Shown here: positions 131 to 34,400 of the stretch, piece after piece
Numbering within the stretch: position 1 is the first letter of the stretch
Layout of the letters: every line of letters starts with the position of its first letter
Program-made: the position numbers and the translations under genes
The notes under the pieces: model-generated
The model's input: only the letters and a program-made list of their open reading frames with translations
The model's database searches: none
Told to the model about the DNA's origin: nothing
Assembly (NCBI RefSeq): GCF_020745735.1
Contig: NW_026867863.1
Span: 862,504-926,503 of the forward strand
Source of the DNA: Hemiscyllium ocellatum
Lineage: Eukaryota
DNA: 64,000 bases
Direction: 5' to 3'

Positions 131-1680
131 ATGCTTATAGAGTTAAAATCGCCTATCATATCCATCCTATTATTCTTACATATAGCTGAGGTATCCTTAC
201 ACGTTTGTTTCTCAATATCCCTCCATCTATTAGGGGGTCTAGAATACAAAACCAAAGCGCATAATCATCCCTTTCTTAATTCTCAGTTCCACACAAACAA
301 CTTCCCTGGATGTATTTCCGGGAATATCCACCCTCAGCACAGCTGTAATGTTATCCCTTATCAAAAATATCAATCACCCTCCTCCCTTGCCCCCCTTTCT
401 ATTCTTCCTGTAGCATTCGTATCCTGGAACATTAATCTTCCAGTCCTGACCATCCCTGAGCCATGTACCTGTGATTGCTATGATATCCCTGTCCCATGAT
501 CCTAACCATGCACTGATTTCACCTGCCTTCCATGTTAGGCCCCTTGCAATGAAATAAACACTGTTTAATTTATTCGTCCTACTTTGTCCCTGCCTGCTCT
601 GACTGTTTGACTCGCTTCTGTTTTCAATTGCACTAGTGCCAGATTGACCTCTTTCCTCACAATCTCCCTGGGTCACAACACCACCCCTCTCCCTACCTTA
701 CTAGTTTAAATCCTTCCGTTCAGCTCTAGCAAATTTCCCGGTCAGAATATTGGTCCCATCCAATTTAGGTGCAATCCGTCCTTCTTGTCCATATCACTTC
801 TAACCCAAAATAAATTCCAATGATCCAAAATTATGAATCCTTCTCCCATACACCAGCTGCTCAGACTCGCATTCATCTGCTCTATCCTCATATTCCTGCC
901 GTCTGTAGCTCGTAGCATTGGGAATAATCCAGATATTACTACTTTCCAGGACCTCCTTTAATATTTTCTGCCTAACTCTCTGTAATCTCCCTTCATAATC
1001 TCAATCTTTTCCCTTCCTTTGTCCTTGGTTCCAAAGTGGACAATGTCCTCTTGCTGTCCCCTCTCCCCCATGAGAACTTTCTGCACTCTCTTTGAGACAT
1101 CATTGATCCTAGCACCGGGGAAACAACACACCATTCTGCTTTTTCGCTGCTGGTCACAGAAAGGTATCTCTGCACTCGGATTGCAGAATCCCTGAACACA
1201 ATTGATCTCTTTGAAGCCGATATAACCCTCATTGCATTAGACCTAGTCTCAATACCAGAAACTTGGCTGTTCGTCCTATGTTCCCCTGAGATTCCATCAC
1301 CCCCTACATTTTTCAAAACAGCATACCTGATTGAATCGGTACAACCACAAAAGACTCCTGCACTAGGTGCCTACCTATCTTACATTTCCTGGAGTTAACC
1401 CATCTATGTGACAGTATCTGAGACATCGCCCCTTCCTATAACTGCCATCCATGAGATACTGTTGCTTCTAACTGTCTCTCCAACCGATCCATTCGATCTG
1501 GTAAGATTCGCATCAAACAGGACCTATGACAGATATAATCTGCAATAATGCTTAATCTCTCTTTAAACTCCCACATCTGACAAGAAGCACATACCACTCT
1601 ATTAAAGCCAATTTTTACTCCTTCGTAAGTTACAGAGCCAGAAATTAATACAGTCTTATTCCTCGAGAAAACACTGCCCC
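131..1680 (-). mobile_element. CR1-clade LINE, degenerate 5' part (ORF1 plus APE endonuclease N-terminus)
   Basis: ORF 374-676 has APE motifs (YFIARGL..DIIAITGTWL..GYECYRKNRKGGKGGG). ORF 993-1316 resembles the CR1 ORF1 esterase (SIVFRDSAIR). ORF 1436-1696 has CASCQMWE..DRLERQLE. Confidence 0.8.
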
Positions 1681-4645
1681 ACACAAACTTTAGCAATTCA
1701 AGTCAGTTGATGATGATTTGTTTCTCAAGGAAAAGCCTGACACTTCCACGCTTGTCTAGAGATGCAGATAATCACTGGAGGCATTGAAAAGTATTTACAC
1801 GAATTGCGAATGGTTTCTTTCTGTGTAGTTTGGCTTCTTTTTCTCTGAACAAACAGTGTTACTTCTTAATCATATTGTGGGAATGAAGATTGCCTCATTT
1901 TTTAAAGCAGAAATCACACATTATACTTCCCTGGAATAAAGAAATATAATCTAAACTTAATGGAATATGGTGATTGGGATGTTTAAATTGTAAGTTATCA
2001 GAGATTTAAAGCTTATTTTCACGACCAATTAATTCCAGCCTCAATGGGTCACTTTAACTTCTCACAGAAATGTCTTTAAACAACGGTTTATCCCTTTGTT
2101 AAGGAAAGTAAAATCATTGAACTATGGATAGGTTTTACTTGCTAGTCAAAGATGGAAAAGAGTTTTAGCCAAAGAGAGGCCTGAGAAAATAGTGCGCGGA
2201 TGCACCCTGATCTAAGTAATGGGGGAACAGCTCGAGGGGCTGAGTGCCCTCCTCCTGCACTTTCCTATAATTGTGTCCTTCATTAGGCTAGCACTGACAC
2301 TGAACAATTTTTATTAAAATATTTTAACAAATTAATTGTTTCACAAATTCTTAAAACATCTTTGATTATTTGGAACGCGAGCATTGACGTTCTATGTTTG
2401 AGTGATCAAAACAACTCCCACCCAATTACAGCAGTCACTGCAATCTGGAGTGTGTTGTTACTTCACGAAACAGTTTCTTGTGAAAATACAGCTTGAAATC
2501 AGGGTTCTCACATTCAATGATTTTCTGATATTAAATATCTCTGAACATTCTCAATTTCTTCAAACGCATCTTCTCTCTGTACAGCTTGTTTAATCGAACA
2601 GAACTTCTTTTTAATGAAACAACAAACTTTGATTGCTAGCAAACCAAAATAAAGACAGAAGTTTCTGAAGATTCTCAGTAGGTCTCGTGGCGGCTCTGGA
2701 GAGAAAGTAAGGTTGACATTGCGCGTTCCGAGATCCCCCTTCAAAAAATTGTTTTCATGTTTTTGGCACCTGTTGAATTAGACAGCGATTACGTTTGCTT
2801 GACTGCTGTTGCAAAAAGATTCTTAGCAAAGGTACTGGAATGCGTAAGATAGCAACTGATGACTAGTTGAAAGGCTATCACCATCTGCTGGAAGTGTTGG
2901 ATTCAGCGGAACCCCCACTGCACTGAACAGTCAAATTCAACCACAGCACTGGTTAAATATAAAATAAAACAACCTAGGCATGATCTCAACAAAAATGCTT
3001 CAAAGCAATTCATTCTGGAATAGTTATACATGTTATTGTTAGAATGGTAATTTAAAAGCTGGGATTTATTTGAGGGGTTATTCCATTAACCCCAGCTAGT
3101 GATGTCCAAAAGCTTGTGAACAAAAATGGACTTGGAAAGAGCTGCTAACCGCCAAAGTTGTTTAATATCTAAGAGACACAAATCAGGATTGCGATTGAAT
3201 AGATTTCAACGGCCTCTGTGAATGGAATTCCAAAAAAACTCCCAAACGACTCGATCTGGTTTTTTGCCCCGAATGAAACTGATTAGAGATGATGTTACAT
3301 ACGTCTCTAACAGGTTGTAAGTGAACACAGGCCACGTGGCATGGAGTCAGGGTCACTACTACAATATCACAGCAGACCTGAACACAATGAGCTCGACACT
3401 ATATCGGAGAGCACAGCCCACCTGTTTTACAGTGCATAAACCATGTTAATTATTAACACATTCCAACAAATAAGGATTGTTCCAGAATGTTTATGCAATG
3501 AAATTAACATTGCAACAATTTTCCAGGAATACTTTGACTGTAAGTCTGAATTGTCCAAAGTCTGTGGGAACTACAGAGGAATAAAACTATGAATTGCACT
3601 GCCATAAATTCACTGTCACTGGACTTCAACGTTGAACTCCCTTCCTCTTACTCATTAATGTTGATGCACCAGATGGTCTACTTAGTTAGAAATAGATTAA
3701 AACATTTTGAACTGTATTATGACATTTTCCAGTGACATTAAAAGCTGGCAAAATGTTTTCAAATAATACAATGCAAATTAATTTCTGATCCTACATTGTG
3801 TCACTAAACACGTCCCGGACAATCGAGGCACAACGAAAATAAGCAGCATATTTTCCTCTGCCTCGCTCAATTATATATCCCTTGTTGCCAACAACCAATT
3901 GAAACACTCTTGCAATCTGCCTTTTGTTACTGATGTGTTCGTTCTGATACTAAAACATGACCAGGGCTCTCAATTCAGAGGCACCTAATCAAATATTCTA
4001 TTTCTGGCAGATAAGCATGGTTTTGAAATGGGATATGAAATTGAACTGTCGGAGATTCAGGTATTGGAACCGGACAACTTACAAATGGTCAGGATCAGTT
4101 GACAAGTTAGTCGGAGATAGCACCGAAACATATTGTACAACAATCTTGGTCTTTCCAATATATCTGCTCAATTCCTCAGGTCCAATATGTTCACTGTAAT
4201 TGAACATTCATCGTAGGAATGAAAAAGATAATACCCATTAATGTGAACGAGAATGGGTTCACAATGAACATAGATAATCACCGATTTAATCAACTAAATA
4301 AGTCATTGTAATTAACAACATTATTGATGTAGGACATATTGCAAATTTATGCACAGGTGCAAAGGAAATGGATTCTTCTTTAAATTATTTTTACGTATTC
4401 TGAAAACATTTCTTGTACTCGAAGATTTTACATATTCTGGACAAAGCCAATACTCCATTCCAGTGTGGCAATGCGTTTCTGTTGAAACAAATAGGGCAAG
4501 TATTTACTATCAGGTTTTCTTTACAATGGGTGGGTCAGTTTCTTGTTAGCTGTTTTGCAACATACGAAAATGTTTTAAAAAGGTATAAATTGAAAGCTTG
4601 CTTCTGTCTGGAGTTGCCCACTTTAAATGAGGTCTAAGTAAATAT

Positions 4646-4960
4646 GGGCGGCGTGGTGGTTTCGTGATGAGCACTGTTGACTTTCAGATTCAGATTCCCG
4701 TGCTTGGTTCCAGCCTCAGGTGACTGTCTGTGTGGAGTTTACACATTCTCACCTGTGTCTGCATGGGCTTCCTCCCACAATCGAAAGATGTGCTGGCCAA
4801 GTGAATTGGTAATGCTGAATCATCCATAGTGTTAGGTGCATTGATCTGGGGTGTATATAGGGTAGGGTAATATGTCTGTGTGGGTTAGTCTTCAGAGAAT
4901 CGGTGTGTAATTTAAGGGACAATGACCCGTTTCCATAGTGTAGGAAATCGAATCTAAATG
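4646..4960 (+). mobile_element. HE1-type tRNA-derived SINE
   Basis: gggcggcgtggtgg head, then ggtgactgtctgtgtggagtttacacattctc, gtgaattgg and an aatcgaatct tail. Positional paralog of 31125-31435. Confidence 0.85.
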
Positions 4961-5164
4961 ATCGCCACACTTAACTAATGCTAAGTACATTGCAAAAATT
5001 GGTCAAGTACATTAATTAAAAAACCCTCTATTTTCAGTCTGAATACACAACGTGCTCTGATATCCTCTCGTTCATGTCTTCTGCAAATTTATGAACTCTG
5101 CATATGTCTGAACACGTCGACGCAGACTACGTTCTCTGCATTCGCAACAAGCATTCCTACTGTT

Positions 5165-5543
5165 TTACAGTAGATTTCCAACAGTATGGAAAAAGGCCAC
5201 TGTACTCAACAATTCCACACCGACCCTCCGAACAGTAAGTAACACATTCCACCTACGCTATATTTACTCCTGTCTAATGCACTATAACCTACACATCCCT
5301 GAATTCAATGTTTAATTTAGCACAGCCAATTCACCTAGCCTGAACACCTTAGTGACTTTGGGTGGCGGGGGGTGGGGGGGGGGGTTTGTGGCGGGGGTCG
5401 GGGGGCGAGGTAACTGGAGCACACAGAAGAATCCCGGACATGGGGAGAATGTGCAAATTTTACACAGGTAGTCACCCGAGAATGGAATCGAAATGCGGTC
5501 CGTGGTGCTGTGCAATGCTCACCACTGAGCCAGCATGCCGCCC
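5165..5543 (-). mobile_element. HE1-type SINE with internal G-rich expansion
   Basis: Ends in ccactgagccagcatgccgccc (reverse SINE head), with a G-run tract at 5361-5410. Paralog of the split SINE at 29111-30860. Confidence 0.85.
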
Positions 5544-7284
5544 TATGAGTTAATGCGTGAATTATTTTAACTAATTAAAAATTTGGCCTTGATCACATAA
5601 TTCCACATAGCAGTTGTTTCCGAAAGAATGACTTCAATTGAAATTTTGTTGTAAAATGTAACTATTCATTTAAAACGCATGGATTGGGAACACCTAAAGC
5701 ACTGTGCAGATTAAATCATTCAGTCACTGTTTTATGTTTTTCCTGCAATTCCAGTTTAATCAGCGACATAAAAATTAATTGACTCGTTTTACTTGTGCAA
5801 CTGATCAAAGCAGTGAAACTGGTCTGTTCTTCATCGAATTGGGCAGAATTTCCAAATGGTCTTTGCCAATGATCTTTTCCAACCAGAAAACTGTGTGTAG
5901 TGTACAGCGGAATTGAAAAGTGATTCTTGACTAATTACAACATAGTCATGGCATCTTTGCTCAAGAGCAAGAACTATTAGAACAACATACTTTTGAAATT
6001 TTATTTACATTTCTCTATGACTTCCAAATGTTTGGAAGACAGAACTTGTGATTCAACTGGATAGTTGAGTTTTGACTTTGGATTGTAAATAGTGGACTAG
6101 ATTAATCCTTAGTTATTACTTCTCATTACATTTAAGTCATCATTGTTCATGGAATAGTGCAGGTTAGATGGGCTTCAGATTGGTGTGATAATCCGGTGCA
6201 ACATCGAGGGCCGAAGGGCCTGAACTGTGCCGTAACTTTCTATGTTCTCACTAAAACTCGCACCCTAAGGTATCGTTTTTTCCTTCATTTCCAAAAACAT
6301 TGCGATTTGCCTTTCACGTAATACTAGGCTTTATGAAGATTCAACTGGCATGCTGATTGCATCGAATGAGATAACTGGAGCAGTTCACTGACACCAACCA
6401 TGTTAACAGTGCAATAACAATGTAGAAACCAGAAACAGTTTCCCAAATGTAACAAAATTAATGTTACAGTCCCTACCCCTCATTAGAGCAAAGATCAACA
6501 AATGACAACACTGAGGAAACCGATGGGATTGCAGCAGAACGGGCTCTGCAAACATTTCCAACCAAAAACATGATGTTACCTCACAAAAAAAAGAAATCAA
6601 AACAAAGTTGTACAGATTCCAGGCAGAGAATGATCAAATTGAATAGAAATACCAAATAATAACAGCAGCCTTGTTTGTGAGGTGATTTACTTAATACTTT
6701 AAGCTGTAAAGCTTTCGGAAACAGTTCAATTTATTTCCAATCTGTACACCTTTTGCGGTCATGCCATTCTTGTGTTGTGCACAGTACAGCAGTTGAAGTC
6801 ATATAATGATTAATCAGATTGAGATCAAAATAAAGTTAGTTCAATAGGCAAACATTATGACATTATTATTTTAAATTATAGCAAGTTCATTTCAATAACG
6901 TAACCTGATCAATTCTGCAGTTTCAGATTTTAATCCCAAATTTTACTTTGAAAGATGTAACTCGAAACAAACTTGACTTAGTTTACAATTAGAGCTGAGG
7001 TTTTTTTTTAAAAAAATAATGCACTAAAATACTTTTTTCTCATTTCTTTCACTTCCGTGTTTCTGCCTTAAATTCGTTTTCAGACAGTTACAAACAGACG
7101 TAATGTTTTCAATCAAGCAGCAAAAAAAATGCCAGATGAATTTAATAAATGTAGCAACGGTTCAGCAAAAACAAAGAACCTCACAAAAATTCGTAATTAA
7201 AGTAATCCAGAGAGACCATCTCCTCACCAGAAAGAAAACACGAATTACTGAAAGTATGAAAACGCAGATCAATTTCACAAAATG

Positions 7285-7500
7285 AATAAGAATCCAATCA
7301 ACTCACTGCAACTGAATCATAAAATAAACTCATAATAAAATCAACTGAAAACAACAGATTTAAATGAAAGATAATCAGAATCCAACCAACTCAATTCAAC
7401 TGAATCTTATAAAACAATTTAAAAAAGGTAATCAGTGTGATTCAACAAAACCAAGTAAAAACAAAGTCGGAATCCAAGTCAACTCAATTCAACAGAATCA
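7285..7500 (-). repeat. Degenerate ~29-nt repeat 3' of the minus-strand JH
   Basis: gaatccaa(t/c)caactca(c/a)t(g/t)caac(t/a)gaatc units near 7290, 7378 and 7470. Mirror of 27245-27540. Confidence 0.7.
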
Positions 7501-8038
7501 AACAAGAAAAATCAGAATCTAATCCACAGAAGGAAACATAGTATCCCAAAAAAATACATTTTATAACCAGCTTGTCATCAACAAAACTTACAAAATAAAG
7601 GAGAAAATATAATCATGGTAAGAACATTATGTATACAGAAAATATATTCAAGAAATGAATAATGATATTTTCGCATATTTTAATCATGTTTGTTAATATT
7701 TCAAAAATCTTTTAATTCTGAGCATTTACTGTCGATAATAAAACTCACAATTAGAGTGTCACTGACATTAAACATTATTTATACCTGACCGATGAAGCCA
7801 AATTAGGTGTTTCTCACAGAATGACCACCTGATTAAAAAAAAGATACACCGAGCAACTGACTCCGTCATCATCATTTTAACTATTTGCTGAACCTTAACT
7901 GAAGTCTATAATCAGCCTGAAAAAAATCAATCCGAACCAAATCACCTCAGCACAGAATGTGAGTTTCACTTAATTCAGAAATTAGTCACACGAATAGAGA
8001 GTTTTAAAAAAGTCTCTAAGAAAGTTCAAAGTTCTTAC

Positions 8039-8084
8039 CTGAAGTCACTGTTACCATGATCCCTTCGCCCCAGTAATCAAGTTA
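8039..8084 (-). pseudogene. IGHJ: IgH JH segment, minus cluster: (TAA)LDYWGEGIMVTVTS with GT donor
   Basis: The reverse complement reads TAA CTT GAT TAC TGG GGC GAA GGG ATC ATG GTA ACA GTG ACT TCA G|gtaag. It has a WGxG motif and an in-frame TAA at the 5' edge. Confidence 0.9.
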
Positions 8085-8122
8085 GCCAGTGTTACAGTCT
8101 CTGGACTGCTCACACCATAACT
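8085..8122 (-). promoter_or_regulatory. Damaged JH recombination signal (22/23-spacer class)
   Basis: Nonamer-like AGTTATGGT, a 22-nt spacer and CACTGGC instead of CACTGTG. The coding-proximal GTG is lost. Confidence 0.7.
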
Positions 8123-8349
8123 AGATCTGCATTAAAAAAAAACAAAAATCAACCATTATTTTAAATTTTCGGACCCACGGGCAAAATAAAGTCACGATAT
8201 ATCTTAATCACATAATTGTGCTAGTGGATTCTGATCATTTTGACAAATTTTAATGTTGTTTTATACTTCACAGTGTAACATATGAGCTGATTCTGAAAAT
8301 CACCAAATGGCGTATCAATACTTAGCAGCACTTATACAAATTAAACAAA

Positions 8350-8465
8350 GCTAAAAATCACACACCACAAGGTCATAGTCCAACAGGTTTAATTGGAAGC
8401 ACACCTTTGTACCTTTTTTTTAACCTTTGTACACCCCAGTCCAACACAGGCATCTCCAACTCATG
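8350..8465 (-). mobile_element. PLE terminal fragment inserted in the D-J interval of the minus cluster
   Basis: aaaaatcacacaccacaaggtcatagtccaacaggtttaattggaagcac is the reverse of the tail at 60-120. It is absent from the paralogous + interval near 26460-26480. Confidence 0.65.
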
Positions 8466-8580
8466 ACAAATAAAACAGTGATACTTTCATAAAACCCCTC
8501 AGAACTAATACTGCACTGTAAGTTAAGACGATTTGTACAAGTAACCATTTAATAAATGCAGAAATAATGGAGGCTGAATA

Positions 8581-8608
8581 CGGTTCTGCATTGATCATAA
8601 ATGCCGTG
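8581..8608 (-). promoter_or_regulatory. Degenerate 12-RSS directly after the minus V/D remnant
   Basis: The reverse complement reads CACGGCA, tttatgatcaat (12 nt), GCAGAACCG. It aligns to the + copy CACTGCA-attatgatcgat-ACAAAAACC. Confidence 0.75.
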
Positions 8609-8892
8609 TACCAACTGCACAGTCTTAAGGTTAATCATGTCCAACGCAAAAATGTTGTTTGAACTGCCTATGGAAGCAGTAAATCGTCCTTCAATCGTTG
8701 GTGCACAGTTATTGTTGGATGAAGTTTGGTACCAAAGCAGCCACTCCAGGCCCTGCTCGGGAACTTGTCGGACCGAGTGCAGGTAGCAGCTGCAAAGATT
8801 GAATTTGCTGGTTTTACAGGTCAGTCTCAGGGTGCCTCTGGAAAGGCCAATCCCTGCCTCTGGATGAGTCAAAATAACCTTTTACTGGACAT
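8609..8892 (-). pseudogene. IGHV: IgM-type VH exon pseudogene fused to a D-like remnant
   Basis: ORF 8549-8872 reads [29 protein letters not shown]. There is a TAA at 8882-8884 (for TCA), the FR2 Trp is Ser, and the DTAIYYC segment is deleted. It ends in CAGTTGGTA before the 12-RSS. Confidence 0.92.
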
Positions 8893-9020
8893 CTTTAAAA
8901 AAGAAAATAAATAAACCTTGAGCATGAACGCTGATGAAATGATGGCTGAGTCGTTGACATTCCTGCAGTAGACTGATATTGAGACAGTCACAAAGAGAGA
9001 CTCGAACAAAAAATACTGAC

Positions 9021-9069
9021 ATGTTAAGACAGTCAGTAACAAGCTTAGAAAAATTGTCGACCTAATCGT
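9021..9069 (-). pseudogene. IGHV: VH leader exon with start codon mutated to ACG
   Basis: The reverse complement reads ACG ATT AGG TCG ACA ATT TTT CTA AGC TTG TTA CTG ACT GTC TTA ACA T|gtcagt. It is 49 nt, the same as the + leader. Confidence 0.9.
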
Positions 9070-9149
9070 TGTGATAACTTGTGGAAAACGGTTCTGTCAA
9101 GGTCTTTCTAAACAAAGCCGATCCAGGAGTGTTGAATTATGGTCCAGTG

Positions 9150-9280
9150 CCCAGGATTAATATGACCATCAGAAGGCTCAGGCTTACAGTTTCCACCTAT
9201 TGGTTTCCTGCTGGATGCTGAGACCGGATCCTGGTATCAGCTTGCACAGCCCGAAGAGATGGACTCATGTATTTACATGA
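9150..9280 (-). promoter_or_regulatory. Putative VH promoter (minus cluster)
   Basis: ATGTAAAT at 9271-9278 (minus strand) and an AT-rich CATATTAAT near 9155-9165. Positions match the + promoter. Confidence 0.45.
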
Positions 9281-11061
9281 GGATATGCATTAACATGGAG
9301 ATATACACATCTTGGGATATTTGTTTTGCTGAATAGCTTCTTTAGACGTTTTTTTTAAATGGTGGAAGTAAATTTGAGTAGCTTCCGGTCTGCTTCAGAT
9401 ATAGTCGCAAGTATTTTGTTTCAAAAAAACAAAACGAATTAAATTGAAATTTAGCTCCCTTTATTTCAGCGTTCATCCACAAGCAGATAAAACTAAAACT
9501 AAAGTTCAAAGATGTTGCTAGCTAATTAAATAGTTGAGTCTTTTTTCCTCTGGACACTGAAATTCTATGTTGCACTACAAAATAGCATGTAATTCATGCG
9601 AAACATTTCGAAATTCACTTTAGGCAATTGAATACAGAGCGTGTCCAAAGTGATTATATTTACAATATTCAATTAGAAGTTAATTCCCTTTAATTCTGCA
9701 TTCAACCACAAGCAGATAAAACTAAAAAGAACTTCAATAATACTATTAGCCAACAAAGTAGTGACTTTATTTTTGCTGTCCCTCAAAGTCTCTCTGACAT
9801 TACAAATTAATATTTCATTACAAATCAGCGTTTCTAAATTCAATGTAGGCAACATAATATGGAGCATGTCTGAAGTGATTATGTTGAGAATGTGAGTACA
9901 TGTCACGAAACAGTTTGGACCCCGAGATTAGAAGTACCTCCTTACATTGCAGAATGTCTCTCCTTGCATCTTTTCTTTCTAATTGCTCCGACCCTAAAAT
10001 GCATCATAAAGGAAAGCTGTGTGCCTGAGAACCAAAAAATGATTTGGCAGTGATACCAAACACCCAGGTAACCTTTTGACAGAGCATCTAATGAACTGGA
10101 ACAGGCCAGTCCATGAGTTAAAAGTAAATCATCAACATGTAAACCATTGTAGGTAACTGTCTTGTACGTCAGGAGTGTTTGGTTAATTTAGATAGTATTA
10201 CAATAATTATTACCATGAATGTAGGTTATAAACAGTACATTAATCTGTTCACTGGAGGCTCTGACATGGGCAGTTAACTCGTAAATATCAGCAATAACTC
10301 GCCGTTACACTACATTAGTATTAACCATGTATAACGGGTCCTTCTAGTTTTAAAGAGATGCATGAATCAGAGGATGGTGCAACGAGCGATGTGAGTTTTA
10401 ACCAATTCAAGTGTGTTAATTTACTTTGAGATGATAATAAATGATACTGCAATGTGCGATATGGGATTCATTAACTTCATATTCAGGAGCTTTTAAGATA
10501 CTCAATAAACAGGCTGAACTAACCAGAACGTCATTGCATTCAATTTCCTGTTTTCTGGCAGTCTTACATTGAATGCTGTATTCAGTGACTTTCCTTTTTA
10601 AAGAAGAAATGCTACATGAAATTTGTCCATTGGGAGTAAACGGGCAAATATAATTTGTTCGGTAGAATTTTATCTTGGTTGATTCATTTTCCCTTTAATC
10701 AGCCAGATACAACGGTTGGCAGCAATTAAGCTGACTGCAGAAAAGGTCCTAGAGTTCCCAGGTTTATTTCCAGGAAGCATCTGAGTTTTTGCAGTGGATC
10801 AAAGATATTTTTGTCTCACTATTGACCAGTTGGTGGAAAGCCAACTGCGAGCCATAACCACTGCCTTCGCAGAAACAAATCTACACAGCAACAATGCTGG
10901 AGAAAATTGTCTTTTTCAATTTTGTACCTTGGAGAACTCGTCCCACCTCTCATTGAATGAAATATTCGCAGAGTATCGGACACAATCTAAACATCATCAG
11001 GTCATTCGAGGATCACTACAGCACTATTTAATATTGAGAAAATCGTTAAATCGTCTCAGAG

Positions 11062-11300
11062 TCATGGAGTGATACAGCATGGAAACAGACACTTCGGTCT
11101 AACCAGTCCATATCAGTGATAATCCCAAACTAACTGATCCCACCTGTGTGTTCTTGGGACATATTCTTCCAAACATTTGTTACAGGTTTATTTATCCAAA
11201 CGTCTTCTAACAATTTTAACAATACCCATCACCAAATCATCCCACATACAAACCATTCACTGTGAAAAAAGTTGTGTCCGTTATCTTTTTAAAAGTTTTT
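11062..11300 (-). mobile_element. CR1 3'-end / SINE-tail fragment
   Basis: gtcatggagtgatacagcatggaaacagac..ccagtccat is a typical CR1 3' tail. A paralog at ~23640-23880 shows it predates the duplication. Confidence 0.6.
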
Positions 11301-13834: not shown

Positions 13835-13840
<6 letters not shown>

Positions 13841-23295: not shown

Positions 23296-23588
23296 TTACA
23301 TTACGTACAGTGTGGAAACAGGTCCTTCGGCCCAACAAGTCCACACCGACACACACCCACCCAGACCCATTCCCGTACACCTAACACGAAGGACAAGTTA
23401 GCGTGGCCAATTCACCTAACCTGCACATTTTTGGACTGTGGGAGGAAACTGGAGCACCCAGAGGAAACCCAAGCAGACACGGGGAGAATGTGCAAACTCC
23501 ACACAGTCAGTCACCTGAATCGGGAATTGAACCCGGGTCTCTGGCACTGTGAGTCAGCAGTGCTAACCACCGAGCCACCATGCCGCCC
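23296..23588 (-). mobile_element. HE1-type SINE, well preserved, private to the right arm
   Basis: cagtgtggaaacaggtccttcggcccaacaagtccacaccgac...gctaaccaccgagccaccatgccgccc. Absent at the paralogous point near 11355. Confidence 0.9.
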
Positions 23589-25600
23589 ACTGTATTTTCA
23601 CTCTGTTGGTGGATTTCAACAGTAGGTGACATATTTTTATTATGAGAGGAGAAACAATGTAAAATATATAACGGAGACAGCTTTTTCACAGAGAATGGTT
23701 TGTGGCGGGCACTGTTAAAACTTTCAGACGACATTTGGATAAGTAAATGAATATCAAACATTTGGAAGGATATGGGCCAAGTACACACAGGTGGGATCAG
23801 TTTAGTTTGGGATAATACTGGCATGGACTGGCTGGACCAAAGTTTCTGTTTCCATGCTTAATCACTCCATGACTCTGCGACTATTTATCTTTTTTTCTCA
23901 ATATTGAACAGTGTTGTCATGATCCTAGAATGAACTGTTGACGTTTATATTGTGTCTGAGACTTCGCGAATTCTTGTTTCAATGAGAGGAGGGACGAGTT
24001 CTCCAAGACACATAACTTAAAAATAAAATGTTCACCAGCTTTGTTGCTGTGCAGAATTGATTCTGTGGAGATAGTTTGCAATTGGCTTTCCACCACCTCG
24101 GCAACAATGAGTCAAAATATCTTTGATCCACTGCAGAAACTCCAGTAAATGAAACTGGGAACTCAAGGACCTTTTCGGCAGTTAGGTTATTTGCTGCCAA
24201 GTATTGCATCAAAAGACGAAATGAAGCAACCAAAATAAGATCCTACCAAACTATATTTTCCCATTTTCTCACAATGGACACATTCCACTTTGCATTTCTT
24301 CTTTTGAAAGGAAAGTCACTGAATACAGCATTCACCGTATGATTATGAGAAAACAGGAAATTGAATGCAATTACGTTCTGGTTAGTTCAGCCCATTTATT
24401 CAGTATATTTAAAGCTTCTGAATATGAAATTAATTGACCAAAATCCCACGTTGCAGTAACATTTGTTATTTTTATTTCAAAATAAATTGACAAATACGAA
24501 TTGGTTCAAACTCACATCACTTAATGCACGATTCTCTGATTCATGCACCTCATTAAAACGAAATGGGCCCTTTTATACTTGGTTAATACAGGTGTAATGT
24601 AACGCCGAATGTTTGCTGATTGTTACGAGTTAACTGTCCCTATCAGTGAGCAGAGAAATGTACTGTTTATGACCAACATTCGTGGTAATTATTATTGAAA
24701 TACGCACTAATATAACAAAACACTCCTGATGTACCCAGACAGTTACCTGCAATGGTTTAGATTTTGAGGATTTTGCTTTAACTAATGGACTGGCTTGTTC
24801 TAGTTCATTAGATGTTCTTTTAAAAGGTTACCTGGGTGTTGTATATCAGTGCCAACTCACTTTTTGTTTCTCAGGCAAACAGCTTTCCTTTATGATGCAT
24901 CTTAGGGTCGAAGCAATTCAAAAAAGAAGATGCAAGGAGAGACATTCTGCTTCTAATCTCAGGAACCAAACTGTTTAGTGACATACAATCACATTCTGAA
25001 TATAATCTCTTCAGACATGATCTATATTAGGTTGCCTAGATTGATTTCAGAAACGCAGATTGGAAATGATGTATTATTTCGTAACATCAGAGAGACTTTG
25101 AGGGACAGTAAAAATAACGCCACTAAATTTGATGGCTAATAATATTAGTGAAGTTCTATTTAGTTTTATCTGCTTGTGGTTGAATGTAGAATTAAATTGC
25201 AATTGAATATTCTAAATATAATCACTTTGAACACGCTATATATTCAGTTGCCTAAATTGATTTTTGCAATGTCTAGTATGAATTACATGTTATTTTGAAG
25301 TGCGACAGAGAATTGCAGTGTCCAGAAAAAAAAATGCTCAATTGTTTTATTAGCTGTTAATATCTTTGAACTTTGATTTTAGTTTTATCTGATTGTGAAA
25401 GAATTTAGAAATACAGGGAGTTAAATTCCAATTTAATTCGTTTTGTATTTTTTAAAACAAAGTACTTGCAACTAGCATTTGAAACAGACCTGAAGCTACT
25501 CAAATTTACTTCCACCATTTAAAAAAAACACTTCCAAAGAAGCTATTCAGCAAAACAAATATCCTAAGATGTGTATATCTCCAAGTTCAAGCGTAATCTC

Positions 25601-25723
25601 ATGTAAATACATGAACCCATCTTTTCGGGCTGTGCAAGCTGATACCAGGATCCGGTCTCAGACTCCAACTGGAAACCAAGAGTCGGAAGCTGTCAGCCTG
25701 CCCCTTCTGATGGCCACATAAAT
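25601..25723 (+). promoter_or_regulatory. Putative VH promoter: octamer variant ATGTAAAT (25601-25608) and TATA-like CATAAAT (25717-25723)
   Basis: These lie 209 and about 90 bp upstream of the ATG. ATGTAAAT is retained in the minus copy. Function is inferred. Confidence 0.45.
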
Positions 25724-25809
25724 CCTGGGCACTGGACCGTAATTCAACACGCCTGGATCGGCTTTGTTTAGAAAGATCTTGACAGAATATTTTCTCACAA
25801 TTTATCAGA

Positions 25810-25858
25810 ATGATTGTATCGACAATTTTTCTCAGTTTGTTACTGATTTTCTTATCAT
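25810..25858 (+). CDS. IGHV: VH leader exon MIVSTIFLSLLLIFLS(C)
   Basis: ATG, 16 hydrophobic codons and one nt, then a gtgagt donor. It joins the AG acceptor at 25985 to give [11 protein letters not shown]. Confidence 0.93.
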
Positions 25859-25985
25859 GTGAGTGTTTTTTGTTCAAGTCTTTCTTTGATACTGTCTCAA
25901 TGTTAGTCTACCTCAGGAATGTCAAAGACTCAGCCATCATTTCATCAGCGTTAATGTTGCAATTTAATTTGTTTTCTTTTCAAAG

Positions 25986-26307
25986 GTGTCCAGTCAGAGG
26001 TTGTTTTGACTCAGCCAGAGGCAGAGACTGGCCCTCCTGCTGGTAGCCTGAGACTGACCTGTAAAACCAGCGGGTTCAATCTTGGCAGCAGCTACATGCA
26101 CTGGGTCCGACAAGTTCCCGGCAAGGGCCTGGAATGGCTGCTGTACTACTATACTTCAGTCGACAAAAACTATGCACCAGCGATATTGGGCCGATTTACT
26201 GCGTCCAAAGAGACTTCAGACAACATTTTTGTGTTGAACATGGGAAACCTGAAGATCTAAGACACGGCCATCTATTACTGCGCAAGAGCAGTGGGTAGGT
26301 GGATATT
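25986..26307 (+). pseudogene. IGHV: IgM VH exon fused to D-like sequence; one in-frame stop
   Basis: [105 protein letters not shown]. Both Cys and the FR2 Trp are present. Confidence 0.95.
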
Positions 26308-26335
26308 CACTGCAATTATGATCGATACAAAAACC
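26308..26335 (+). promoter_or_regulatory. 12-spacer RSS
   Basis: CACTGCA (26308-14), attatgatcgat (12 nt), and a perfect nonamer ACAAAAACC (26327-35). Confidence 0.88.
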
Positions 26336-26643
26336 TTTCAGACCCTATTGTTTGCAACACGTCAGTGATTATTTCTACAAACCGTCTTAACTTGCAGTGC
26401 AGTATTAGTTCTCTGGGCTTCTGTGCATGTTTAATTTGTAAAAGTGGTGATAATTATTGATACACCAATTGGTTATTTTGAGAATCAGCTCAAGTGTTAC
26501 TCTGTGAAATATAAAACAACATAAAAATTTATTAAGAATGATCAGAATTCACTAGCGCATGTGATGTAGCTTCATTGTGACTTAATATTGCCAGTGGTTC
26601 CGAAAATGTAATGGGAGATTTTTGGATTGTTTTATGCAGAGCT

Positions 26644-26682
26644 AGTTATTATGTGGCCCAGTGCAGACAATGTAACACTGTG
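26644..26682 (-). promoter_or_regulatory. JH 23-spacer RSS
   Basis: AGTTATTAT (nonamer, 3 mismatches to GGTTTTTGT), 23 nt, and a perfect CACTGTG (26676-82) abutting J. Confidence 0.8.
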
Positions 26683-26730
26683 CCTATCTTGATGACTGGG
26701 GCCAAGGGACCATGGTGACAGTGACTTCAG
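26683..26730 (+). CDS. IGHJ: JH segment YLDDWGQGTMVTVTS with gtgag donor
   Basis: TGG GGC CAA GGG ACC ATG GTG ACA GTG ACT TCA G|gtgag. Confidence 0.95.
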
Positions 26731-27244
26731 GTGAGAATTTTAACCTTAACTGTGATTTTTTAAAAACTTTCCATTCATGTGATTAATTTCTGTATTAAAT
26801 GAAACTCATATTCTGCCTTGAGTTTGGTTTGGTTCGGAATAATTTTTGTTCAGGCTGATTATAGACTTCAGTTAAGGCTCAGCAAGTGGTTATAATGGTT
26901 GTGACGGAGTCAGTTACTCTGAGTGTCTCTTTGTTTCGATCCGATGGGCTTTCAGTGTGGCTGGGTTACTTAATGTCTCTTAATCAGTCAGGTATAAATA
27001 ATGTTTAACGACAGTGACACTGGGACTATCGGTTTTCTTATCGACAACAAATGCTAAGAAGTTGAAGATGTTCAAAATATTACCAAACATGATTAAAAAT
27101 GCTAAAATATCATTATCCATTTCTTGAATATATTTCCTGTACACATTATGTTCTTACCATGATTATATTTTCACCTTTATTTTGCTAATTTTGTTGATGA
27201 CAAGCAGGTTAGAAACTGTCATAATTTTTTGCAGGGCTATGTTT

Positions 27245-27540
27245 CATTCTGTTGATTGAGATTCTAAGATCGTTTGACTTGATTCTGTTGAATTGAGTTG
27301 TTCGGATTTTAAATTTGTTTCAGTTGATTCGGTTGAAATGAGTTGATTGGATTCTGACTGTGCTCTTACTTAGTTTTGCTGAAGTGTGTTGATTGAATTT
27401 TGAAATTGTTTTATTTGGTTCTGTTGAATTGAATTGGTGAGATTCTGATTATGTTTCATTTAAGTCTGTTGTTTTCAATTGATTGGATTCTGGTTTTATT
27501 TTCCTCGAATCTGTTGAATTGAGTTGATTGGATTCTTATT
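27245..27540 (+). repeat. Degenerate ~29-nt repeat in the proximal J-C intron
   Basis: ATTCTGTTGAATTGAGTTGATTGGATTCT-like units near 27282, 27327, 27419 and 27508, plus partials near 27246 and 27475. Confidence 0.75.
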
Positions 27541-29339
27541 CAGTTTGTGCAATTGATCTGTGTTTTCATGCTTTCTGTAATTGGTGTTTTCTTTCTGGCG
27601 ATAAGATGGTCTCTCTGAATTACTTTTAATTGAAAATCTTTGTGAAGTTCTTTGGTTTTCCTGAATCGTTTCGGCATTTGTTAAATTTGTATGCCATTTT
27701 TAACTCAGCTTGATTGAAAAATTTGCATCTGTTTGTAACTGTCTCAAAACCAACTTAAGGCAGAAATAAAGAAGCACGAGGAATGAAAAACTTGACTTTT
27801 TAATACAGTGGTGATTTTTTTTAAAAATCGCATTTCTAATTGTAAATTAACCGAATTTTGTTTTCAGTCGGTTCATTCAAAATAAAATTTGGGACTAAAT
27901 TCTGCAACTGCAGAATTGCTCAGTTCACAAAATTGAAACTAACTTACTACAATATTAAATTTTTTATATTGTCTTAATATTTTTCCATTAGAGAAATTTT
28001 GTTTTGTCCTTAAAGAGATTAATCATTATATGCCTAAAAATGCTGCACTAGATTGTCATGATCATCAAGGGTGTACAGTTGGGAAATAAATCTAACCTTT
28101 GCCGGAAAAGTTACAGCTTTAAATGTTACGTCCCCTCACAAACAAAACTGATGTTATGACTTGTTACTATTTGTTCAATTTAATCATTAATTTACTTGAT
28201 TCTGAGCAGTTCTGTTAGACTTCAGTTCGGGTTTTCTTGTGAGGTTACATCATGTTCTTGGTTCTGTTGAAACTGTTTGCAGTGCTAGCTCTGCTGCAAA
28301 CACATCGTGTTGTCATTTGTTGATCTTTGCTATGTTGAGTATTCTACATTGTTATTGCACTGTTCACATGATTTCTGTCAGTGAACCGCTCCAGTTTCCT
28401 CTTTCTCATTCAATGCAATCAGCATGCCAAATGAAACTTCACAAAGCTTGACGTTACGTGAAAGGTAAGTCGCAGGGTTTTGGAAATGAAGGGAAAACAG
28501 ATACCTTCAGGCGCGATTCTTAACGAGAAGTAATAATTAAAGATTAACCTAATCCACTCTTTACAATCCACGTTCAGAACTCAACTACATAGTTAAACCA
28601 CAATGTCTATCTTTAAACAGTTTAACAAGTCATAGAGAAATATAAATTGAATTTCAAAAGTATAATATTCCAGAAGTTGTTACCTTTGCAAACAAAATCC
28701 TTAACTGTGGTTATAATTGATCAAGAAATGCCTTTCCATTCTGCTGTATATTACACACAAGTTTTCTGGCTGGAAAATATGATTGGCAAAGACAATTTGG
28801 AAATTCTGCTCAATTCGATGAACAACAGATCAATTTCACTGCTTTGATCGGTTTCACAAGTAATCTGAGTCCTGAGTCAATTAATTGTTCTAGCCCTGAT
28901 TAAACTGGGTTTGCTGTGAAAAATGAAACCTGAGTAATTTAATCTGCACAGTGCTTTAGGTATCCCCAATCCCTACTTTTTAAATAAATAGTTACATTTT
29001 ACAGCACAATATCAACTGAAGAGTCATTCTTTTGGAAACAACTACTATAGTGAATTGGTGACCAAGGCCAAATTTCGAATTAATTGAAATAATCCACTTA
29101 TGAACTCGGAGGGCAGCATCATGGCTCAGTGGTTAGCATTGATGCTTCACATCGCCGGGATCCCAGGTTCGATTTTACCCTCGGGTAACTATCTGTACGG
29201 ACTTTGCACATTCGCCCCGTGTCTGCGTCGGCTTTCTCCAGGTGTTCCGGTTTCCTTAAGTAAAAAATGAGGTCTGCAGATGCTGGAGATCACAGCTGCA
29301 CAAAGCACAGCAGGTTAGGCAGCATCTCAGGAATAGAGA

Positions 29340-29375
29340 ATTCGACGTTTCGAGCATAAGCCCTTCATCAGGAAT
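29340..29375 (-). ncRNA. Minimal hammerhead ribozyme motif (family B)
   Basis: Exact reverse complement of 30551-30586. Confidence 0.75.
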
Positions 29376-30550
29376 AAGAGAGAGAGAGCCAAGCCGGCTG
29401 AGATAAAAGGTAGGGAGGAGGGACTAGGGGGGTGGGGCGATGGAGGTGGGATAGGTGGAAGGAGGTCAAGGTGAGGGTGATAGGCCGGAGTGGGGTGGGG
29501 GCGGAGAGGTCAGGAAGAGCATTGCAGGTTAGGAGGGCGGTGCTGAGTTGAGGGAACCGACTGAGACAAGGTGGGGGAGGGGAAATGAGGAAGCTGGAGA
29601 AATCTGAATTCATACCTTGTGGTTGGAGGGTTCCTGAATCGTGTAATCCAAGGACCTGCATGTCTCGGTGGAGTGGGAGGGGAGTTAAAGTGTTGAGCCA
29701 CGGGGTGATTGGGTTGGTTGGTTCGGGCGCCCAGAGGTGTTCTCTGAAGCGTTCCGCAAGTAAGCGGCCTGTCTCACAATATAGAGGAGGCCACATCGGG
29801 TGCAGCGGATGCAATAGATGATGTGTGTGGAGGTCAGGTGAACTTGTGGCGGATATGGAAGGATCCCTTGGGGCCTTGGAGGGAAGTGAGTGTGGAGGTG
29901 TGGGCGCAAAGTTTTACATTTCCTGCGGTTGCAGGGGAAGGTGCCGGGGGTGGAGGTTGGGTTGGTGGGGGGTGTGGATCTGACAAGGGAGTCGGTTCCT
30001 TAGGCAGGTGCTGAGGAAGGAGATGTGGCTGTGGTAACGGGTCTGTTTGAGAACGTGGCTGAAGAGCTTCTGCCTTAGGCAGGTGACTCCCTTGTCAGAT
30101 CCACACCCCCCACCAACCCAACCTCCACCCCCGGCACCTTCCCTGCAACCGCAGGAAATGTAAAACTTGCGCCCACACCTCCACACTCACTTCCCTCGGG
30201 GGAAGGAAGAGGACATGCAGGTCCTTGGACTCCTCCACCGGCAGAACACAACTACACGACGGCTGGAGGAGGAGCGCCTCATCTTCCGCCTGGGAACCCC
30301 TCCAACCACAAGGTATGAATTCAGATTTCTCCAGCTTCCTCATTTCCCCTCCCCCCCACCTTGTCTCAGTCGGTTCCCTCAACTCAGCACCGCCCCTCCT
30401 AACTGCAATCCTCTTCCTGACCTCTCCGCCCCCACCCACTCCGGCCTATCACCTCACCTTGACCTCCTTCCACCTATCCCACCTCCATCGCCCCTCCCCT
30501 AGTCCCTCCTCCCTACCTTTTATCTCAGCCGGCTTGGCTCTCTCTCTCTT

Positions 30551-30586
30551 ATTCCTGATGAAGGGCTTATGCTCGAAACGTCGAAT
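30551..30586 (+). ncRNA. Minimal hammerhead ribozyme motif (family B)
   Basis: ATTC-CTGATGA-A-GGGC ttat GCTC-GAAA-C-GTC-GAAT. Stem I is ATTC/GAAT, the triplet is GUC, and stem III is palindromic ACGT. Confidence 0.78.
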
Positions 30587-31124
30587 TCTCTATTCCTGAG
30601 ATGCTGCCTAACCTGCTGTGCTTTGACCAGCAACACATTTGCAGCAGTTCCGGTTTCCTTCCACAGCCTGAAAATGGGCAGGTTAGGTGAATTGGCAGTG
30701 TTGCTTTGCACATAGTGTTCAGGGATGTGCATATTTAGGGTGCATTCGGTGGGGTAAATATGGGTTGGGTAAATGGGTTTTCGTGGGCTCCATATTGCTC
30801 GGGCGATCGGTGTGGAATTGTTAGGCCAAATGGCCTGTTTCCAATATGTTGGAAATGTACTCTAAAACAATGGAAGTACTTGCTGCAAAAGCAGAGAATT
30901 TATTTCCCATCGATGTATTTAGACATATGCGGAGTTCATAAATTTGCAGAAGACATGAACTAGAGGATAACAGAGTACATTGTTTGAACTAGAGGATAAC
31001 AGGGCACATTGTTTATTCAAATGCTGAAAATAGAGTAATTTCTTTTAATCAATATACTTGACCGATTATTGCAATGTAGCAATCTGAAGGAGACTGCTCA
31101 CGTTAGTTAAGTATGATGATTATT

Positions 31125-31435
31125 TAGATTTGATTTCCTATAGTATATATTGGGCCATTTGACCCTACAAGGCCACACCGATCCTGTGAAGAGCAACCCA
31201 CCCAGACCCATTCCCCTACCCTATATTTACCCTTGAGTAATGCACCTAACACCATGGACAATATAGCACGACCAGTTCACCTGACGGGCACATCCTTGAA
31301 TTGTGGGAGGATTCCCACGCAGCCAAAGTAGAAACTGTGTAAACTCCACAGAGACAGTCACCCGAGGCTGAAACCGAACCCCGGTACCTGGATCTGTGAG
31401 GCAGCAGTGCGCAACACAAATCCACCGCTCTGCCC
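31125..31435 (-). mobile_element. HE1-type SINE
   Basis: cccacccagacccattcccctaccctatatttaccc...aaactccacagagacagtcacccgagg...tgccc. Paralog of 4646-4960. Confidence 0.85.
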
Positions 31436-34400
31436 ACATTTACTTAGCCACTCAGTTAAAGCGGGCAACTCCAGAGAGAAGCATGTTTTCAATTCACACT
31501 TTTTTAAAAAAAAAACATTTTCGTACATGAAAAGCTGCTAACAAGAAAATGAATTTGCCCTAATTTCTTCAACAGACATGCATTTCCACACTGTAATGCA
31601 GGACTAACGTCATGCAGTTCATGTAAAATCTCCACAGTTCAAGAAATGCTTTCAGATATGTAAAAACTATTTGGAGTATTATCCATTTCCTCCGGAGCTT
31701 TGCATTAATTGTTGACATATCTCACCATTGCTAATTACAACGACTTATTAAGTTTATTGACTCAGTGATTATCTATGTTCATTGTGAACACGTTCTCGTT
31801 TGCATTAATCCTTTGGTTAGTTCCTCTGATGAATGTTCAATTGCAGTGAATACATTGGATGTGAGGAATTGAGCAGATATATCTGCTAACATACAGATTG
31901 TTGTACATTTCGTTTCAGTGTTATCTCCGACTAACTTGTCAACGGGTCCTGACCATTTGTAAATTGTCTGGTTTGGGTACCTGAATTTTCGATAGTTCAA
32001 TTTTATCTTGCTCTTCAAATCGACTTTTATCTGCCAGAACTGCAATATTTGATTGGGTGCCTCAGAACTGAGTGCCGTGGCTAAGTTATTCCAATCAGAA
32101 CGAATACCACAGTAACAAAAGGCAGGCAGATTCCAAATGTTTTGATATTGGTTCTTGGCAATAAGGGATACTTGATTGAGCGATGAAGAGGGAAACATGC
32201 TGATTATTTCCTTTTGTGCCTCAGTTGGTCATGGACATGTAGCACAATGTAGAATCAAAAATTATTTTGCATCTTACTATTTGAAAACCTATTAGCGTTT
32301 AATATCACTGGCAACGGTCATAATGCATTTCAAAACATTTTCATCTATATCAAACTAAGTAGACCACGTGGGGCAGCAACATTCATAGGGGTTCTAGGGA
32401 AGGGAGTTCTAGGTTAAAATCCAGTGTCAGTGAATTGATGGTAATGTAATCCCACTTTTTATTCCTCAGAGAATTTGGACAATTCGGAGCTGCTGTCAAA
32501 GTATTCTTTGATAATTGTTGCAATGTTACTTTCGTGTACAAACTTTCTGGAACAATCCCTTGTTGTTGGAAAGTATCAATACTTAACATCATGTATGTAC
32601 TGTCAAACAGGTGGGCTGTCTTCTCTGAGATAGTGTGAAGCTCATTGTGTTCAGGTCTGCTGTGATATTATTGTAGTGTGCCTGACTCCATGGCAAGCGG
32701 CCTGTGTTCACTTACAGCCTGGTTGAGAAGTATAAAATACCAACTCTTATCCGGTTAATTCTGGGCAAAAAAGCAGATTGAGTTGTTAGTGTGTTTGTTG
32801 GAGTTCCACTCACAGAGGCAGGTGAAATCTATTTCATCTCTGTCCTGACTTGTATCTCTTAGATATTAAACAAAACTTTGGCGTTTAGCAGCTTTTTCGA
32901 GATCAATATTTGTTCACAAGATTTTGAGCACATCCAGCTGGGGTTAATCGAGTAAGTCCTTTAATAATTCCCAGCTTTATAACTGCTGTTCAAATAATAT
33001 CACGTATAACTAATCCAGAATGTATTGTTTTGAAGCATAATTGATGAGATTATGCCTAGGTTGTTTTACTTTATATTAAACTGGTGCTGTGGCTGAATAT
33101 GATTGTTCAGTACAATGGGGGTTCCGCTGATTCCAACACTTGCATCATATGGTGATAGCTTTTCAAGTGGTCTTCAATTGTTATCTCGGCTCATCCACTA
33201 CCTCTGCTAAGAATGCTTTTCTCACTGCAGTCAAGCAAACGTAACCGCTGTCTAACTCAACAGGTGTGAGTTCTTGTGCCAATAGCATGATAACAATTTC
33301 CTGAAGCGGGAGGGGATGGGGTAGGGGGGTGAGGGGTGTCTCTCGACGTGAAACGTTAACCTCGCTTTCTCTCCACAGGAGCTGCCAGACCTGCTGAGTT
33401 TCTTCAGAAATTTCTGTCTTTATTTTAGTTTTCTAGTATTCCAAGTTTTTTGATTCATTTCTAAAAATGTTCTGTTCGATTAAACAAGTTCTTCAGAGAG
33501 AAAATGCACTTAAACAAATTGAGAATGTTCAGAGATATTTATTATCAGAGAATCATGTTTTACAAGAAAGCATCATGAAGTAACAGCACACTTCAGAGTG
33601 CAGTGCCTGCTGTATTTGGGTGAGAGTTATTTTGATCAGTCAAGTAGTGAATGTCAGTGCTCCCATTCCAAATACCTGTAATCAACAGAATTACTTTTTA
33701 AAGAATGTGTGAAACAATTAATTTGCTAAAATATTTTAATACAAATTGTTCACCGCCAGTGCTAACCTAACGACTGACACATGATAGGGATGGGGAGGAG
33801 GACAGCACTAAGCCCTCGAGCTGATCCACCACTAACTTATATCATGGTGCATCTGCGCACTAACTGCAGACGCCTCTCTTTGGCTAAAACTCTTTACTAC
33901 CGTTGTTTTGCAAGCAAAGTCTATCCCAAATTTAATGGTTCGACTGCCCATAACAAAGGAAGACACCGTTTTTGAAAGGCATTTCTGTGAGTATTTAAAG
34001 GGACACAATGAGGCTGTAACATCCCAGTCTCGTATTCCACTAATGGTACTTCTTTATTCCAGGAAAGCATAATGTGTGATTGCCGTGCTAAAAATGAGGG
34101 AATCCTCATTTCCATTATATGATTACGAAATAGCTCTGTTAGTTGAGTGAAAACGCAGTCAAACCACACAGAATTAAACCATTCAACATGTCATCTTGTG
34201 TGGGCACGCAAGTGCCTCAAATACTTTTCAATTCTTCCGGCGGACAGGTGTGGAAGTATCAAACTTTTATATCGCATTGAAAAACCAGTTGTCCTCAGCA
34301 TACTTGAATTGCTGAAGCTCGTGTGGTATTAGCATTCACAGCACTGTTAGAAAGTGAGTCCCATGGCTGTGATTGAGGAAAAGTAAAACGGCAGGGAAAT

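Follow-up and report, generated by a model that had tools for sequence, protein, structure and literature searches.

Organization of the locus

Our study examined a window of 64,000 nt from Hemiscyllium ocellatum (assembly GCF_020745735.1, contig NW_026867863.1, positions 862,504-926,503 of the forward strand), in which two IgM-type immunoglobulin heavy-chain clusters lie head to head as the arms of a large inverted duplication. Coordinates are those of the window unless a contig is named. Comparison of the whole window with itself by blastn showed that 1808-13173 and 34184-21480 are collinear reverse complements, falling into five inverted blocks (all E=0) with per-block identities of 73.6-79.3 %, and no inverted match comparable to this pair was seen elsewhere in the window. 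The arms, with their variable (V), diversity (D), joining (J) and constant (C) elements, the middle, rich in transposable elements (TEs), and the blocks are as follows:

1808-13505, minus strand: left arm, a predicted pseudogene IgM cluster with promoter, leader, V, D remnant, J, about 6.2 kb of J-C intron and about 4.4 kb of upstream flank
13506-21479, no strand: middle ('spacer'), TE-rich, with a reverse transcriptase-like open reading frame (ORF) at 14716-15348 and a repeat at 17361-18624
21480-34184, plus strand: right arm, with equivalent parts in mirror orientation and about 7.5 kb of J-C intron
1808-5342 and 34184-30679: inverted block 1
5437-6128 and 29223-28521: inverted block 2
6245-8347 and 28529-26428: inverted block 3
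8493-11356 and 26420-23596: inverted block 4
11361-13173 and 23292-21480: inverted block 5

The homologous parts of the left and right arms measure 11.4 and 12.7 kb, and 8.3 kb lies between them (13174-21479), the homology of the left arm to the right ending at about 13173-13205. In a global MAFFT alignment the arms were 80.1 % identical over 10,728 aligned columns (Kimura two-parameter distance, K2P, 0.23), with values of 72-87 % in 500-column steps. Inserts of 1.4 kb (29258-30683, palindromic) and about 300 bp (23296-23591) were confined to the right arm, and one of about 145 bp near 8343-8490 to the left. Each arm carries an octamer-like and TATA-like promoter, a leader, a V exon, a D-derived remnant with a recombination signal sequence (RSS) of the 12-bp-spacer type (12-RSS), a J segment and part of the J-C intron. 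The V leaders start at exactly 9069 (minus strand) and 25810 (plus strand), 16,741 bp apart, and transcription is divergent. Between the arms, V exon 2 (79.3 % identical, K 0.244) is not better kept than the introns (K 0.25), while J (91 %) and the 300 bp promoter are kept somewhat better than either.

The 300 bp before each leader (25510-25809 and 9070-9370) are 87.9 % alike, against about 79 % for V or introns, and contain an octamer-like ATGTAAAT that is identical in four of four copies across H. ocellatum and the bamboo shark Chiloscyllium punctatum.

This layout agrees with the first-pass annotation of the window, which had described inverted arms around a spacer of about 8.3 kb, leaders at 9069 (minus) and 25810 (plus) pointing apart at a distance of about 16.7 kb, and a promoter, leader, V, D, J and J-C intron in each arm; it had overlooked the in-frame stops in both V exons. 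The self-comparison that it had called for returned collinear inverted blocks and not mere dispersed repeat matches.

The right cluster

The right cluster could be followed from promoter to membrane exon, all on the plus strand:

25601-25608: octamer-like ATGTAAAT
25810-25858: leader exon of 49 nt, ATG intact, GTGAGT donor
25986-26287: V exon 2, V-set (Pfam, 1.5e-9)
26288-26307: D1-D2-derived remnant of twenty bases, fused to V
26308-26314 and 26327-26335: D2 3' signal, with heptamer CACTGCA, 12-bp spacer and nonamer ACAAAAACC
26683-26730: J (YLDDWGQGTMVTVTS; WGQGTMVTVTS), GTGAGA donor
40305-40664: Cmu1 exon (open frame bounds), C1-set, intact
45686-46084: Cmu2 exon remnant, C1-set
47792-48187: Cmu3 exon, C1-set
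48600-49019: Cmu4 exon, C1-set, with a mu-type secretory tail ending SCQ*
51489-51616: membrane exon TM1 (NIWTTASTFTTLFFLSIFYSAAVTLVK)

A TATA-like CATAAAT stands about 87 bp ahead of the ATG, and the leader-V intron is 127 nt long. With a C. punctatum VH (P0007) the V exon shares 91 % identity, and with Heterodontus HV01 71 %. The D2 3' signal is separated by about 340 bp from the signal of J, a 23-RSS with a weak nonamer, a 23-bp spacer and the heptamer CACTGTG (26676-26682). The best Cmu4 protein matches were from C. punctatum (82-86 %), and these matches, together with V, J, Cmu1-4, the tailpiece and TM1, identify an IgM-type cluster of an orectolobiform-like shark.

Several lesions interrupt this architecture. 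Framework region 3 (FR3) of V contains an in-frame TAA at 26258-26260, where the codon of the bamboo-shark orthologue is GAA. Cmu2 has an in-frame TGA at 45683-45685, just before the open-frame bound, and its second Cys is replaced by Phe (45893-45895), while the conserved Trp of Cmu3 is replaced by Arg at 47990-47992, as confirmed against a homologue (P0002). With no open frame throughout, the right cluster is a predicted IgM-type heavy-chain pseudogene in this genome.

The left cluster

The corresponding parts of the left cluster, on the minus strand, are more severely decayed:

9021-9069: leader exon, ACG for ATG, donor GTCAGT
8623-8892: V exon 2
8581-8622: D remnant (GCAGTTGGTA) and decayed 12-RSS (CACGGCA, 12-bp spacer, GCAGAACCG)
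8039-8086: J remnant (WGEGIMVTVTS)

The V exon gave no Pfam match and was recognisable solely through DNA alignment. It has a stop at codon 3 (TAA in this genome, TAG in the bamboo shark), a Trp41 to Ser replacement and a deletion of the FR3 end, and in J the heptamer lacks 2 bp and an in-frame TAA stands at the 5' end of the segment. Judged by the missing ATG, the stops in V and J and the deletions, the left cluster is likewise a pseudogene in this genome. The proposal of two IgM clusters thus stands as far as identity goes, being backed by the V-set match, the 71 % identity to a Heterodontus VH and the Cmu1-4, tail and TM1 exons on the right, but neither cluster is functional here.

Constant exons of the left cluster, if present, would lie to the left of window position 1. 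A protein search with Cmu1 gave no candidates for them, and a protein search with Cmu4 returned no protein on the bamboo-shark contig that carries the pair. The left cluster may continue outside the window. The homology of the left arm stops at 1681-1808, at the start of LINE-like (long interspersed nuclear element) sequence, and the right arm beyond 34184 is still collinear to at least 35084 with Cp2, an unjoined bamboo-shark cluster described below. Arm homology thus ends where a LINE-like insert has entered the left arm, and since the right arm goes on matching Cp2, this point does not mark the limit of the duplication.

Conservation of the pair in Chiloscyllium punctatum

The first-pass annotation had suggested looking for synteny in related sharks, and the pair was found in C. 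punctatum; the single whale-shark cluster that was fetched (L004), a member of a distant subfamily, has no mirror partner within 10 kb. The bamboo-shark orthologue (L001; BEZZ01001741.1:120444-142208, on the contig encoding P0007) is collinear with window 5009-40725 in direct orientation at 86-89.5 % identity, both arms included. Its own arms are inverted and 82.5 % alike, and the inner-right junction (about 21458-21480) is common to both species. Four stretches of the window are absent from it:

10343-18278: inner left arm and most of the middle
23296-23591: right-arm insert
29258-30683: right-arm insert
34505-37681: J-Cmu1 intron

The three shorter stretches are inserts of this lineage or bamboo-shark losses. 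The first corresponds to a break at 4008/4009 of L001 (window 10342 / 18279), where 7.9 kb is gone; as the right arm holds a paralogue of this segment, diverged to the usual degree, its absence is a bamboo-shark loss or an assembly collapse. Without it, the bamboo-shark promoters stand about 8.4 kb apart.

Quartet-informative sites in the four arms overwhelmingly grouped left with left and right with right (225 of 242, the two alternatives getting 10 and 7), which means that no homogenisation between arms has taken place since the species split. Gene conversion as the force keeping the arms alike was rejected on these counts.

The two clusters were disabled at different times. In a four-way alignment the left V of both species shares a stop at the same codon, gaps of 6 bp and 10 bp at the V-D junction and the GTCAGT donor, which indicates that the left copy had lost function before the two species diverged. 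In the bamboo shark the frame of the right V is open (P0007), with GAA in place of the TAA, so the damage to the right copy came later and is confined to this lineage. A crude count, rather than a formal dN/dS, of the changes between the species in right V exon 2 gives 12 in synonymous and 13 in amino-acid-changing codons.

The branch of the right arm is far longer than that of its bamboo-shark orthologue (0.117 vs 0.047 in a six-sequence tree and 0.071 vs 0.044 in the rooted tree described below; window 24560-31000 compared with L001 9906-14960). The left arm is less unequal between the species (0.064 vs 0.041).

Support for the assembly

The possibility that the arrangement is an assembly artefact, with a contig falsely joined or inverted, was considered since immunoglobulin regions are repeat-rich. 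The arms differ at 20 % of sites, which is not what a collapsed or duplicated haplotype would give, and the independent C. punctatum assembly has the same arrangement and junction, so it is not an artefact of this assembly alone. Furthermore, 82-94 % of 31-mers from the middle and both inner junctions are contained in at least four samples from two studies. Runs of one organism (several samples, two studies) contain 80-94 % of the 31-mers sampled from 21000-27000 and 12500-22400, and two other organisms contain about 5-6 % of those of 21000-27000; no RNA run was among the runs listed as containing the sampled 31-mers. With these k-mers present in several independent samples as well, an artefact is highly improbable.

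Germline joining of V, D1 and D2

Two unjoined clusters of the bamboo shark, Cp2 (L002) and Cp3 (L003), were used for comparison. Both are laid out as V-D1-D2-J with segments 300-450 bp apart, V and J each having a 23-RSS. D1 of Cp2 is ATACTACAGTGGGT, the D1 core of both clusters is CAGTGGGT and the D1 signals are 12- and 22-spaced. In Cp3, D2 is followed by an intact CACTGCA, 12-bp spacer and ACAAAAACC.

Against this layout, all four copies of the pair (two arms in two species) run from the V end into G-CAGT(G/T)GGT-A and then directly into the D2 3' 12-RSS. The D1 core is trimmed at the identical base and has the identical flanking G and A in each. Compared with the unjoined clusters, about 700 bp of V-D1-D2 intervening DNA is gone, and the V 23-RSS, the D1 RSSs and the D2 5' RSS are lost. 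As joining is irreversible, left and right have the joined state in common as a derived character, and the arms are the predicted descendants of one germline-joined VDD-J cluster.

The unjoined clusters have defects of their own. In Cp2 (L002 11280-11310) the D2 3' part, the 12-RSS and about 190 bp are deleted, making a normal D2-J join impossible, and the V heptamer of Cp3 is decayed (CCGCAGC).

Relationship of the two arms

Cp2 and Cp3 match both arms cluster-wide at 78-86 %, and the pairwise distances and an unrooted tree were close to a three-way split. Because the similarity of these clusters to the arms about equals that between the arms themselves, sister status needed testing. A tree was built from 1,927 gap-free columns and rooted with whale-shark L004. 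Left and right were sisters (Shimodaira-Hasegawa-like approximate likelihood ratio test, SH-aLRT, 97.4; ultrafast bootstrap, UFBoot, 99), and the approximately unbiased (AU) test rejected both other rootings (p=0.017). The tree supports the arms as the closest relatives of each other among the sampled clusters.

These results bear on an alternative in which the arms are members of a dispersed family that unrelated rearrangements brought head to head, each having been joined independently by germline RAG activity. The similarity of Cp2 and Cp3 to both arms and the near three-way split would suit such a history, as would the differing V-D junctions of left and right. The rooted tree and the AU test favour sister arms instead, and the arms share the D1 trimming point with its flanking G and A and are physically adjacent; we regard this history as quite improbable.

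Measured in branch length, the depth of the left/right node is roughly double that of the divergence from Chiloscyllium. Since the branch uniting the sisters is short, divergence from the unjoined lineage, joining and duplication probably came in close succession. The event being ancient, the pair is not a fresh record of cluster birth.

The middle, element E and the inner junction

Upstream of V lie an element with inverted termini and the inner junction:

11361-13505, no strand: element E, 2.1 kb, with inverted termini of about 590 bp, in the V upstream flank
21458-21480, no strand: inner-right rearrangement junction, the abrupt start of the right copy, inside the inner inverted terminus of element E

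Element E stands upstream of V in the left cluster, the right cluster and Cp3 (L003 6613-7834). The right copy (21480-23295) is without the outer 330 bp or so of the inner terminus, being truncated exactly at the duplication junction. A fold-back centred on the inverted termini of element E was considered and rejected, as the element is found once per arm and not once at the centre.

The middle has a counterpart in the unjoined Cp2. At 7.6-10 kb upstream of the Cp2 V, L002 15-2415 aligns collinearly with window 19868-17355, read in the orientation of the left cluster, and lies at an almost equal distance from the proximal upstream flank (6.4 vs 6.6 kb, across an N gap of estimated size in L002). 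On this collinearity, the middle is probably the native upstream flank of the left cluster, which would make the right cluster the derived copy. Pfam gave weak RVT_1 matches only for the ORFs of the middle and of the inserts, and TE classes are accordingly named loosely.

Origin of the inverted pair

Inverted duplications with a single-copy spacer, as in human inverted duplications and yeast palindromes, can arise by fold-back priming or replication template switching. The pair resembles them in its mirror arms, in a spacer of several kb that is seemingly the native flank of one arm and in a sharp inner junction on one side only; it differs in being interstitial and very old, with no terminal deletion context known.

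Taken together, the data make it likely that a germline-joined VDD-J IgM cluster was copied locally in inverted orientation and that the resulting pair is old, the left cluster having died early and the right, derived one later in this genome. On this account V, D1 and D2 of an ancestral IgM cluster would have been fused in the germline before the duplication. An inverted copy would then have landed about 12 kb upstream of the V of the original, giving two diverging clusters well before this lineage split from Chiloscyllium, at the doubled depth given above. The left cluster would have kept the ancestral upstream flank, the present spacer, and died early, and the right copy would have stayed open in the bamboo shark and been disabled here by the V and Cmu2 stops and the loss of the Cys and Trp. 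The copying may have taken one step, in which a nascent strand or resected end at about 21479 switched to the opposite strand at about 13173 and copied back through the cluster; such a switch would leave 13174-21479 as a single-copy loop.

The same map would also result in two steps, if the VDD-J cluster had first been duplicated in direct tandem and the right (upstream) unit had then been inverted. Tandem duplication is the usual growth mode of multigene families, and the order left V, upstream flank, E, flank, truncated E, upstream flank, right V is the exact result of inverting the upstream member of a tandem pair, so that this history fits the map as well as a single step and the data do not discriminate between them. 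It needs two rearrangements where one suffices, and there is no trace of a second breakpoint inside the window, the outer end of the right unit lying beyond comparable sequence. We judge two steps to be rather unlikely and would favour a single event by template switch or fold-back. The local inverted duplication read by the first-pass annotation therefore remains the best reading, in view of the rooted tree and the joined state, while the 'birth' that it saw recorded is not a recent one. Its fold-back mechanism was not borne out, as tandem duplication with inversion gives the same map and the inner-right junction is too diverged (about 20 %) for microhomology to be read.

An origin by replication of a RAG hairpin coding end was rejected, as the axis of symmetry, 4-12 kb upstream of V, does not coincide with a signal sequence.

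Several points weigh against local copying of a single joined cluster. The repeat at 17361-18624 also occurs in the whale-shark J-C intron, so the case for a native flank rests mainly on 18624-19868 and the spacing. The tree joins the sisters by a short branch (0.013) and has a long outgroup branch (0.33), with four other clusters sampled. The V-D junctions of left and right differ by the 6-bp and 10-bp gaps, which two separate joining events could have left as well. The bamboo-shark contig is without window 10343-18278, through deletion or through collapse in a draft short-read assembly, and long-range contiguity rests on two assemblies and on k-mer presence.

A broader proposal would make head-to-head (and tail-to-tail) mirror duplication a recurrent way of multiplying IgM clusters in orectolobiform sharks, with this pair as an old, species-conserved example. 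We hold it to be doubtful; if it were true, the short branch that carries both VDD joining and duplication would hint that germline RAG breaks at immunoglobulin clusters seed duplications.

Comparison with known shark IgM clusters

Cartilaginous fish such as nurse and horn shark carry multiple IgM miniloci of the form V-D1-D2-J-Cmu1-4-TM (PMC2435157, PMC5192425). The clusters described here share the split leader, VH type, single J, long J-Cmu1 intron, four C1-set exons, mu tailpiece and TM1. Functional nurse-shark IgM genes are reported to lie 120 to >200 kb apart, their relative orientation being unknown (PMC2435157, PMC5192425). In contrast, the promoters here are divergent and 16.7 kb apart (8.4 kb in the bamboo shark), and both clusters are dead in this genome. 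IgM clusters can therefore lie much closer (8-17 kb between promoters) than the at least 120 kb published for functional nurse-shark genes. For the white-spotted bamboo shark, 37 IgM clusters were found on seven chromosomes (PMC8692893).

Germline-joined shark immunoglobulin genes (VD-J, VDD-J and VDJ) are known products of RAG acting in germ cells (Lee et al. 2000, PMC2193156). The pair is like them in having V fused to D-derived sequence, and one join would be left to make, because only the D2 3' 12-RSS and the J 23-RSS remain. Unlike the joined genes described, this one was then duplicated, and the existence of two copies places the joining before the duplication and before the split of the two genera. 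Pseudogene IgM clusters have been reported from the nurse shark (G6-G8, G2C; PMC2435157). The present clusters similarly keep their architecture while having stops and decayed signal sequences, but the two members of this pair died at different times, the left ahead of the species split and the right afterwards, in this lineage only.

Multi-cluster IgM genes, germline-joined variants and pseudogene clusters are textbook shark features (PMC2193156, PMC2435157, PMC5192425), and the pair is a well-documented, ordinary case of gene-family evolution. Our literature search found no description of head-to-head shark IgM clusters, although its coverage was incomplete and this is weak evidence of novelty. 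The value of the locus is as a dated, two-species case of the growth and decay of the multi-cluster shark heavy-chain locus, and it implies no new mechanism. For annotation, neither cluster should be counted among the functional IgM genes of this genome.

Other repeats in and near the clusters

The clusters have also received several repeats. The 1.4-kb palindromic insert of the right arm (29258-30683) has 340-bp termini that are 96 % alike, is missing from both the left arm and the bamboo-shark orthologue, and has relatives at 14.1-15.1, 57.2-58.1 and 61.8-63.0 kb. The other right-arm insert (23296-23591) resembles a short interspersed repeat, with relatives at about 37.5 and 49.2-49.4 kb. 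Within the J-Cmu1 intron, 3.2 kb at 34505-37681, likewise absent from the bamboo-shark orthologue, contains an RVT_1 fragment (36149-36454, minus strand). Finally, the Cmu1-Cmu2 intron holds an inverted pair of Penelope-like retroelement sequences (43672-44344 / 45518-44848), 95.7 % identical and with an RVT_1 domain and GIY-YIG-like motifs, which ends about 170 bp before the damaged Cmu2 exon.

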